From NCBI GenBank assembly GCA_976226885.1, contig OZ320314.1, positions 90,706,001 to 90,770,000 on the forward strand: a stretch of 64,000 nucleotides of DNA, written 5' to 3'. Below are positions 26,289 through 27,704 of this stretch, in pieces (the stretch's first letter is position 1; each line of letters starts with the position of its first letter). This stretch comes from Iphione sp. A-MEVVRFRX5. Taxonomy: Eukaryota. The translations under genes and the position numbers were made by a program. The notes under the pieces were generated by a model, which did not search any database, was not told the origin of the DNA, and was given only the letters and a program-made list of their open reading frames with translations.

Positions 26289-27704
26289 CTATTTGGTTAG
26301 CATGTTGGCACGGTACTTCATAAGCGCTTTCCCCAATTTGTTCTCACCCTCTATTTCTTTCTGACCCTCATTGCCATTACCCGAACTCGGTGTACAGCCT
26401 AAATCGGCATCCGCGTCACAATAATAGATATCATTCGCACCAGTATTCATGAGATCATCGATGAGACCTGGGTTGAATTGATATTTACACATCACCAGAT
26501 TATACAGTGTTACCTCTGAAATGTCTGTCCATTCTTTGCAAGTGGTGATTTGTCGCCCAATTCTCCTTGCTTCGTAGCCTGTCCTGCTGTTTTTGATTTC
26601 GCGAAGCGCGCGGGAATCATTGCATGCGCGCGCCTTACACACCTGGTACGCTGTTTCCAGGCAGGCGAAGTAATCACCCTCGGCAGAGAAAGGTGTTTCC
26701 TCCATCGGTGACAGCCCGTCAGCGTCGTTGTTGAATACATATGTCTTGTCCCCAGCATTCGTCGATTTTTTAGATGGTAGCACGTCATCTGGAAGATGGC
26801 ATTCGTCCATCGGCGTAAAGCGCTCACCTTCAAGAAGTATGTCCAGGCCTCTCACAGTCGCGCGTTTCCCCGCTCTCCTAGCAGACGCAGCGATGCGGGA
26901 TTGTCGTCGGTGTGTTTCCATCGCTCTTGGTGGGATGTCTTCCTTCACATATATTTCCTTGAAGTTCTCACTCTTCGATAAGTTGGATCTCCCTTTTAGG
27001 ACCTTTAACCTGGTATCCGCATCTGCTAACCAGACACGAACCCTCAGCCTTTGCCCGTCGTCTGCTAGAACAACAACATCACGGAGCTTCTTACGGTTGA
27101 TCGATGCTGCTTGATGAAGGATCCTGCCCACAAAATTGTAGACATTCTTCTCTTCGTCGCACGGAATTCCGTCGATTATGATTTGTCGTGCCCTATCCTG
27201 CAACTCCTGTCGAGAGATGTCATGGTCAAGCCTCGTCACCTTCCGAGATAGCACCTCGACCCTGGCTGTCAGGCTGTCGCCCATGTCTGCGCAAGACTTT
27301 TCACAGCGCTCCAGTAGGCCTTTATTTTCTTGTCTCACCTTCGAAAGCTCTTGCTTTAAAGCATCGTTCTCCTCCGTCATCGTTCTTCTGATGTTATCAA
27401 CCTCCAGGACGAGATTGTCGATTAACTTTCTCTGATCGTTGATCAAGTCATGCAGTATGGATACGTTGGAAGGCATGTCCATGTTGACAGCAGGTTCACT
27501 GGTACTGTCAGTGTCACCCAATGTTGACCCACTTACGCTTTCCCGCTGGTCCGCCTTTGTGTTGCCCCCATTATCGCCCAGAACTATCGTCTCGTCATTT
27601 CTTTCAGTATTTCTACTCGATGACATCGATCTGAGTACCTGGGTAAGTCCTCTTGGGGTGTTACTATGTCTTGATGTTGAATCGGTACGCGGTTGCCTAG
27701 GCAT
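26289..27704 (-). CDS. LINE ORF1 protein (disordered N-terminus, coiled coil, RRM/CTD) with C-terminal NADAR/YbiA-like domain, 471 aa
   Basis: Heptad-like helix at aa ~83-170. ELQDRARQIIIDGIP, EIYVKEDIP and AGKRATVRGLDILLEGERF match L1-type ORF1 RRM/CTD motifs. aa ~322-466 follow the NADAR pattern: LSP..PF..EG..F..LETAYQ..K, EARRIGR, W, KY..NP.L...LM.TG, D..LG, GENKLGKALM..R. Confidence 0.85.
   Translation of the reverse strand: MPRQPRTDSTSRHSNTPRGLTQVLRSMSSSRNTERNDETIVLGDNGGNTKADQRESVSGSTLGDTDSTSEPAVNMDMPSNVSILHDLINDQRKLIDNLVLEVDNIRRTMTEENDALKQELSKVRQENKGLLERCEKSCADMGDSLTARVEVLSRKVTRLDHDISRQELQDRARQIIIDGIPCDEEKNVYNFVGRILHQAASINRKKLRDVVVLADDGQRLRVRVWLADADTRLKVLKGRSNLSKSENFKEIYVKEDIPPRAMETHRRQSRIAASARRAGKRATVRGLDILLEGERFTPMDECHLPDDVLPSKKSTNAGDKTYVFNNDADGLSPMEETPFSAEGDYFACLETAYQVCKARACNDSRALREIKNSRTGYEARRIGRQITTCKEWTDISEVTLYNLVMCKYQFNPGLIDDLMNTGANDIYYCDADADLGCTPSSGNGNEGQKEIEGENKLGKALMKYRANMLTK

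Follow-up and report, generated by a model that had tools for sequence, protein, structure and literature searches.

The first open reading frame (ORF1) of a long interspersed nuclear element (LINE) in Iphione sp. A-MEVVRFRX5 encodes a protein (ORF1p) that ends in a NADAR domain, with the fold of Escherichia coli YbiA. The element lies in a 64,000-nucleotide stretch (assembly GCA_976226885.1, contig OZ320314.1, positions 90,706,001 to 90,770,000, forward strand), termed here the window, from whose first nucleotide all window positions are counted. The NADAR domain is an integral part of ORF1p that is kept under purifying selection, and the fusion is ancient. As judged from alignments, the active site is remodelled in the lineage of the window element, yet under strong purifying selection. 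The reading favoured here, which taken as a whole is probable though far from assured, is that of an old, selected ORF1p domain that was ancestrally a hydrolase of a Glu type and is non-canonical in a Tyr-type subclade that includes the window element.

LINE ORF1p is usually viewed as an RNA chaperone or packaging protein; accessory modules such as zinc knuckles, PHD or esterase are few. The NADAR family is known for taking ADP-ribose off the bases of DNA and RNA and for roles in toxin-antitoxin systems and in phage counter-defence.

The ORF1 frame is open on the minus strand from an ATG start, and the plus-strand translation is full of stop codons. An earlier reading of this DNA, made from the sequence only, gave no strand for ORF1; the strand is minus. 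An AlphaFold2 model of ORF1p, built from an 89-sequence alignment, has a mean predicted local distance difference test (pLDDT) score of 85.7 and a predicted template modelling (pTM) score of 0.72. The model displays a disordered region (aa 1-79), a single long helix (aa 80-170), a beta-alpha-beta domain similar to an RNA recognition motif (RRM) together with a small beta-rich domain (aa 171-312) and a helical domain with small flanking sheets (aa 313-471). The parts of the frame are as follows:

26289..27704, minus strand: ORF1, 471 aa and stop; disordered N-terminus, coiled coil, RRM, C-terminal domain (CTD) and NADAR
27195..27467, minus strand: coiled-coil helix, aa 80-170 (AlphaFold2, pLDDT >95)
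26769..27194, minus strand: RRM (about aa 171-277) and small CTD (about aa 278-312), similar to those of L1 ORF1p by structure comparison
26292..26768, minus strand: NADAR (YbiA-fold) domain, aa 313-471, from Pfam PF08719 and structure

Profile and structure comparisons, both named as checks in the sequence-only reading, identify the C-terminal domain as NADAR. Pfam NADAR (PF08719) matches aa 335-468 (E = 1.9e-17); the score of 64.4 bits compares with a gathering cut-off of 35.1. The NCBIfam model TIGR02464, an equivalog domain for riboflavin-intermediate N-glycosidase, gives 52.6 bits, under its cut-off of 73.7. A single-sequence phmmer search with the NADAR part against the PDB found no NADAR, and a profile or fold comparison is required. 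A profile of 15 paralogues from the window genome matches E. coli YbiA (2b3w) at E = 3e-6 and the Phytophthora nicotianae NADAR (8bau) at E = 2e-4. That the frame extends by ~150 aa, which align with YbiA block by block, had been noticed earlier and is borne out by this profile. The aligned blocks (ORF1/YbiA) are LSPME/LSNF, LETAYQVCK/SEHYFQAQK, ARRIGR/ARMGR and GENKLGKALMKYR/GKNRLGYLLMELR.

The modelled domain has the YbiA fold, a helical core with two small beta sheets at its flanks; pLDDT is mostly >90 in aa 313-471, with a loop near aa 441-450 at 64. Aligned with VIA-align, which was used for all Z scores given here, aa 313-471 match 8bau with Z 19.2 (rmsd 2.5, 158 aligned) and aa 309-471 match 2b3w with Z 15.9 (rmsd 2.7, 144 aligned). 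The top Foldseek matches of ORF1p are 8bau (E = 7e-7), 2b3w (E = 6e-6) and the human L1 ORF1p trimer (2yko, E = 1.8e-5).

The half of ORF1p that precedes the NADAR domain is similar in fold to human L1 ORF1p. Residues 129-313 align with the human trimer 2ykq_A (Z 10.3, rmsd 3.9, 175 aligned), the C-terminal portion of the aa 80-170 helix aligns with the trimer coiled coil, and many RRM structures match approximately aa 167-260 at Z 8-9.4. The L1-type ORF1 with coiled coil, RRM and CTD seen in the sequence-only reading is thus confirmed by structure. The order of coiled coil, RRM and CTD and the fold are common to the window protein and human LINE-1 ORF1p (Type II; 2ykq, 2yko, 2ykp). Both are also encoded upstream of an ORF for an apurinic endonuclease (APE) and a reverse transcriptase (RT). 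The window protein differs from the human one in the extra C-terminal NADAR domain of 159 aa and in the absence of detectable sequence similarity, identity within the structural alignments being 10-13%. The Pfam families Transposase_22 and Tnp_22_dsRBD have no match in ORF1 at E <= 1, and neither is among the Pfam families listed for the 89 aligned ORF1 relatives. As Transposase_22 gives no match, the assignment of this half to the L1 type is a structural one. The start of the protein, MPRQ...VLRSM, is conserved in those paralogues that extend to the N-terminus.

The fusion is abundantly found in the window genome (1.18 Gb, 89 contigs). In a tblastn search, the NADAR part found 2,987 first-look candidates; the 150 scored among them all have E <= 2e-25 and are mostly within open frames of 470-630 aa. 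With the Pfam NADAR model there were 4,416 first-look candidates, and the 150 that were scored all have at least 93 bits. The sampled paralogues all align to the window protein across the entire ORF1, beyond NADAR alone. Ten diverged families were extended downstream, with identities to the window element of 38-58% in ORF1 and 48-67% in ORF2, the frame for APE and RT (APE-RT). All ten keep the order of ORF1-NADAR, a middle ORF and APE-RT.

Outside the window genome, an exhaustive HMMER search over 1.84 billion representative proteins detected 934 representatives matching ORF1 at E <= 1e-3, of which 116 reach E <= 1e-10. Identity to the query is 26-30% for the best of these, and most are 400-480 aa long and colinear with it. 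NADAR is present in each of the 150 best representatives of the 934, in 123 of them at the C-terminus. The nearest ESM Atlas clusters are annotated Eukaryota, Annelida being the most frequent, though from very few members. Representatives checked against Pfam NADAR score 67-113 bits, most of them >100, and all 89 members of the ORF1 alignment have a NADAR match. Where the genomic context is readable, an APE-RT ORF homologous to window ORF2 lies downstream of ORF1-NADAR. This was seen at four places in the European Nucleotide Archive (ENA) assembly ERZ25767047, on one 7-kb scaffold of ERZ23500906 and in Logan contigs of ERR14368248/249. The linked elements of these three other public datasets are ~25% identical to the window element. 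The fusion is ancient because ORF1-NADAR proteins of ~25% identity are found elsewhere that are colinear over their full length and likewise lie upstream of APE-RT. A consistent link with APE-RT, which the sequence-only reading had asked for as a check, was found in ten of ten families and in three outside datasets. Of the two outcomes named beforehand as speaking against the domain fusion, neither absence of a profile or fold match nor confinement to this copy was encountered.

Selection was estimated against a full-length relative of 83% identity, L013. The ratio of nonsynonymous to synonymous substitution rates (dN/dS) is 0.11 in the NADAR part and 0.145 in the coiled coil and RRM; it is 0.084 in the middle ORF and 0.09 in ORF2.

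Two further NADAR loci of this genome are of interest. A paralogous ORF1 (L020:1165-2391:+; G000:C13, ~21.62 Mb) has two tandem NADAR domains in one open frame, both of the Tyr type. A 329-aa open frame at G000:C22:27636416-27636865 (minus strand) has a NADAR match of 176 bits, where matches elsewhere in the genome are at most 109 bits; from its score, this is possibly a canonical NADAR gene of the host itself.

The active site is where the window domain departs from known NADAR enzymes. In the Phytophthora NADAR, E43 and E125 surround the distal ribose, and K50, R79, W89, R93, W133 and D130 surround the pyrophosphate (PMC11543638, PMC11125620). The E. coli C7 NADAR has E88 and K95 as equivalents of E43 and K50, and mutation of D171, the equivalent of E125, abolishes efficient activity (PMC11543638). 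NADAR families are defined by this last-strand residue: members of the YbiA family have Glu, those of the DarT1-linked (BC4488) family Asp and those of the phage (gp30.3) family His (PMC11125620). Active-site columns were compared between 15 families of the window subclade and 148 distant LINE NADAR domains. The codons of three of these positions in window ORF1 are:

26655..26657, minus strand: Glu350, equivalent of E43 and of C7 E88; aligned to the Glu of YbiA SEHYFQAQK and retained
26421..26423, minus strand: Tyr428, at the E125 position in HMM alignments to 2b3w and 8bau
26400..26402, minus strand: Leu435, at the position of Trp133, a pyrophosphate contact, by alignment

Part of the site is retained. 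E350 is invariant in the 15 subclade families, and Glu is found at this position in 147 of the 148 distant domains. K357, the K50 equivalent, is Lys or Arg in 15 of 15 families; W392 (W89 equivalent) and the conserved Lys K407 are retained in the subclade, and D432 (D130 equivalent) is retained in 13 of the 15 families. Three other positions differ between the two sets. Position 428 is Tyr in all 15 subclade families versus Glu in 143 of the 148 distant domains. Position 435 is Leu or Met throughout the subclade (15/15), whereas 147 of the 148 distant domains have Trp, Phe or Tyr there. The LSN motif reads LSP in the subclade, and its Asn is present in 134 of the 148. A more distant NADAR fragment of the same genome has Glu at the last-strand position.

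The window domain thus has Tyr428 where the YbiA family has its conserved last-strand Glu. Besides the common fold, it shares with the YbiA-family enzymes 2b3w and 8bau the first catalytic Glu, the Lys, the residues corresponding to W89 and D130 and the C-terminal helix GxNxLGxxLMxxR. It differs from them in having Tyr for the last-strand Glu and Leu for Trp133; in addition, those enzymes are standalone, whereas in ORF1 the domain is fused to a retrotransposon RNA-binding protein. In a FastTree phylogeny of 169 NADAR domains, the Tyr-type copies of the window genome form one clade with support 1.0, which leaves out all Glu-type sequences and a single foreign Tyr. The window NADAR scores 64 bits in Pfam, compared with at least 93 bits for the best 150 Pfam matches of the genome; the lower score is consistent with a remodelled pocket in the Tyr-type subclade.

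What the domain does can be approached by way of the RNA-binding half. ORF1p trimers would coat the element RNA, and NADAR domains would therefore be dense on the ribonucleoprotein (RNP). By analogy with what has been proposed for NADAR and Macro domains of invertebrate RNA viruses, the NADAR of the ancestral Glu-type elements was most likely an N-glycosidase that stripped ADP-ribose-type adducts from RNA, cDNA or target DNA. In the window lineage, canonical ADP-ribose hydrolysis is doubtful because the catalytic Glu is replaced by Tyr and the ligand-contact Trp by Leu. Canonical Glu-dependent hydrolysis has most likely been lost in the Tyr-type subclade, and the domain would be kept for binding or for a structural role in the RNP, or else as an enzyme whose chemistry or substrate has changed. 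From the residues involved, either of these options appears more likely than a canonical hydrolase.

Several points count against the favoured reading. A counter-defence role for the ancestral LINE NADAR is proposed by analogy. Residues were mapped from profile and multiple-sequence alignments, not by superposition of coordinates. Tyr428 might still support catalysis, as the position tolerates Glu, Asp and His across NADAR families (PMC11125620). The invariance of this Tyr would also argue for a role and not for decay.

The sequence-only reading had hypothesized that the domain could bind or erase host ADP-ribose marks on the RNP or on the intermediate of target-primed reverse transcription (TPRT), as a retrotransposon counter-defence. 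For the window element, such erasure by an active ADP-ribosyl-nucleobase hydrolase is possible but rather unlikely. The close structural match to an enzyme crystallised with ADP-ribose (8bau), the retention of E350, K357, W392 and D432 and the strong purifying selection on the NADAR part are as expected of such an enzyme. Every NADAR assayed in vitro in PMC11125620 removed guanine-ADP-ribose, and PMC11257639 describes phage NADARs as countering DarT1 defence. However, the last-strand acidic residue, which as D171 is needed for activity in E. coli C7, is replaced by Tyr; Leu takes the place of Trp133, and the LSN motif has become LSP. In Pfam the domain also scores low, at 64 bits, beside the 93-112 bits of canonical LINE NADARs, and a host enzyme that would mark nucleic acids was not found.

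A slightly less probable alternative is that the domain is an N-glycosidase with another substrate and a Tyr-assisted chemistry, with a role in RNA processing instead of defence. Candidate substrates, to be regarded with the same reserve, are RNA ends with an NAD cap or another ribosyl modification, or a small-molecule derivative of ADP-ribose. The family offers precedents: riboflavin intermediates are cleaved by YbiA, and soluble ADP-ribose derivatives and by-products of RNA repair are proposed NADAR substrates (PMC11125620, PMC9503650). In nidoviruses, NADAR is linked to O-methyltransferase (PMC11848433). The coordinated, invariant Y428, L435, P333 and D430 also resemble re-specification, not decay. 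On the other hand, the neighbouring domains of the element suggest no substrate. Chance readthrough, a one-off capture of a host NADAR gene in this copy and a domesticated single-copy host gene can be set aside with near certainty: the fusion is in all sampled families and in other assemblies, near-identical and 5′-truncated copies show mobility, and dN/dS is 0.11.

The element itself is a non-LTR retrotransposon (LINE) of 7,066 bp with three ORFs that runs from 27770 to 20705 of the window on the minus strand. Its boundaries were found by searching the genome with the surrounding DNA. The features other than those of ORF1 are, with UTR for untranslated region:

20705..27770, minus strand: full-length LINE, 5′ end at 27770 and 3′ end at 20705, ends set by copy comparison
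27705..27770, minus strand: 5′ UTR, 66 nt, from the common 5′ end of the full-length copies to the ORF1 ATG
25270..26001, minus strand: middle ORF, 243 aa, SGNH/GDSL-hydrolase fold
21447..24260, minus strand: ORF2, APE and RT, 937-aa open frame, first ATG at 24221
20705..21446, minus strand: 3′ UTR with short terminal (CAAT)n tail, from sequence and copy comparison

The properties of a LINE are present, i.e., an ORF with APE and RT, 5′-truncated copies and a common 3′ end. ORF2 matches Pfam RVT_1 with 105.5 bits, Exo_endo_phos with 45.1 bits and Exo_endo_phos_2 with 27.0 bits, the last just below its cut-off of 27.4. A second full-length copy (L002) is 99.66% identical to the window element, and two more copies (L005, L006) are 5′-truncated, 99.7% identical and have the 3′ end in common with it. 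All four young copies end in the same short (CAAT)n tail, of three to four units. No target-site duplication is visible at the four junction pairs of these copies. The window LINE is apparently a young, intact non-LTR retrotransposon. In its relative L013, ORF1 and the middle ORF are unbroken and ORF2 has one break. The final ~66 nt of the 3′ UTR (window 20705-20770) are 91% identical between the two elements, and the remaining UTR ~70%; this suggests a conserved 3′ element, which the RT may recognise. Identity to L013 is only ~40-75% in the spacers and over most of the 3′ UTR. A spacer of ~1 kb between the middle ORF and ORF2 (window 24261-25269, minus strand) is poorly conserved and has an indel relative to L013. 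A second, decayed LINE fragment is found at window positions 42506-44635 (minus strand), where a 442-aa open frame with Pfam RVT_1 (104 bits) is followed by a 231-aa ORF that has no Pfam match.

The middle ORF has no Pfam match and no ATG near its start; it begins with GTG in the ORF list. Its AlphaFold2 model (pLDDT 85.9) has 35 Foldseek matches in the PDB at E <= 1e-3, with TM-scores of 0.5-0.66. Among the matches shown, all those with a natural-protein description are SGNH/GDSL-type esterases, lipases, acylhydrolases or O-acetyltransferases, and a few are designed scaffolds; no solved LINE esterase is among them. The catalytic positions are not conserved among the ten families: that of the Ser (block I) has S, L, M, E or D, and that of the His (block V) has N, D, T, H or S. 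Since Ser and His vary although dN/dS is low, the frame looks like a conserved pseudo-esterase as modelled. One LINE of ERZ25767047 (~25% identity) has a 183-aa SGNH-like ORF between ORF1-NADAR and APE-RT (L046:9535-10086, plus strand), in which a DGVH-type motif is kept and which aligns weakly with the middle ORF (20% identity). On sequence comparison, a layout with three ORFs may be older than the lineage of the window genome. A middle-ORF profile searched for an SGNH-like domain within the longer ORF1-NADAR proteins of other organisms gave nothing below E = 0.19.

A microsatellite-like tail, the lack of a target-site duplication, conservation of the 3′ end and an ORF of SGNH fold, as in the window element, are more usual among CR1/L2-like elements. 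An esterase-type ORF1p of CR1/L2-like LINEs has reportedly been described by Kapitonov and Jurka in 2003 and by Schneider et al. in 2013. Like that protein, the SGNH-fold protein of the window element is encoded upstream of APE-RT, but here it is a separate second ORF in which the Ser and His positions are not conserved. The RT region of ORF2 is no closer to human L1 ORF2p (43.9 bits) than to R2 (43.8 bits), and where matches of ORF2 are named, they are generic 'reverse transcriptase' entries of fish and a pseudoscorpion. A zinc knuckle, which is a C-terminal feature of the Tx1 type, has no Pfam match in the 937-aa frame.

Tx1 is of concern because of a recent report on oyster elements. In that paper (PMC12477816; Genome Biol 2025), the ORF1 of several LINE families of Crassostrea gigas, which Repbase names Tx1, appears to carry a YbiA-family NADAR, for which the authors suggested processing of RNA intermediates. 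The same paper describes one Ectocarpus Gypsy lineage with NADAR at the N-terminus of Pol. The sequence-only reading did not know NADAR as a LINE ORF1 module, a statement that this earlier mention corrects; beyond PMC12477816, no other paper was found that links NADAR or DUF1768 with LINEs. The oyster and window elements are alike in being lophotrochozoan LINEs with a YbiA-type NADAR in ORF1. The oyster report consists of one sentence and a supplementary figure, without analysis of architecture, selection or active site. The window element differs in its three ORFs, including the separate SGNH-fold ORF, and in the Tyr that replaces the catalytic Glu.

NADAR domains are also carried by other RNA-based parasites. 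NADAR and Macro domains are found in polyproteins of invertebrate positive-strand RNA viruses (nidoviruses, and picornaviruses of annelids and bivalves), where a role in adduct removal has been proposed (PMC9503650, PMC11848433). In these viruses and in the Ectocarpus Gypsy elements, as in the window LINE, the domain resides inside a replication or packaging protein. The carrier is a replicase polyprotein or Pol in the former and ORF1p in the latter.

Relative to the one published sentence, what is added is architecture, selection and active-site detail, and not a new kind of system. New here are the three-ORF layout and the Tyr-type NADAR, within a kind of element that has barely been described. 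Tyr428 might also represent a fourth catalytic class of NADAR after Glu, Asp and His, in LINEs that carry the domain against host nucleic-acid ADP-ribosylation, but this is a speculative and improbable extension. It is no more probable that, on this proposal, the Tyr428 type is re-tuned to a different adduct or is a non-hydrolysing shield on the RNP. If true, this would be the first eraser or reader of nucleic-acid ADP-ribosylation encoded by an animal retrotransposon. The presence of Glu-type and Tyr-type domains in sibling elements of one genome provides a natural comparison for the role of the catalytic residue. NADAR is an old, selected part of ORF1p, with copies in the thousands in one animal genome. 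These properties suggest that nucleic-acid modification of the ADP-ribose type is important where invertebrate hosts and their retroelements are in conflict; the same has been proposed for invertebrate RNA viruses that bear NADAR or Macro domains.

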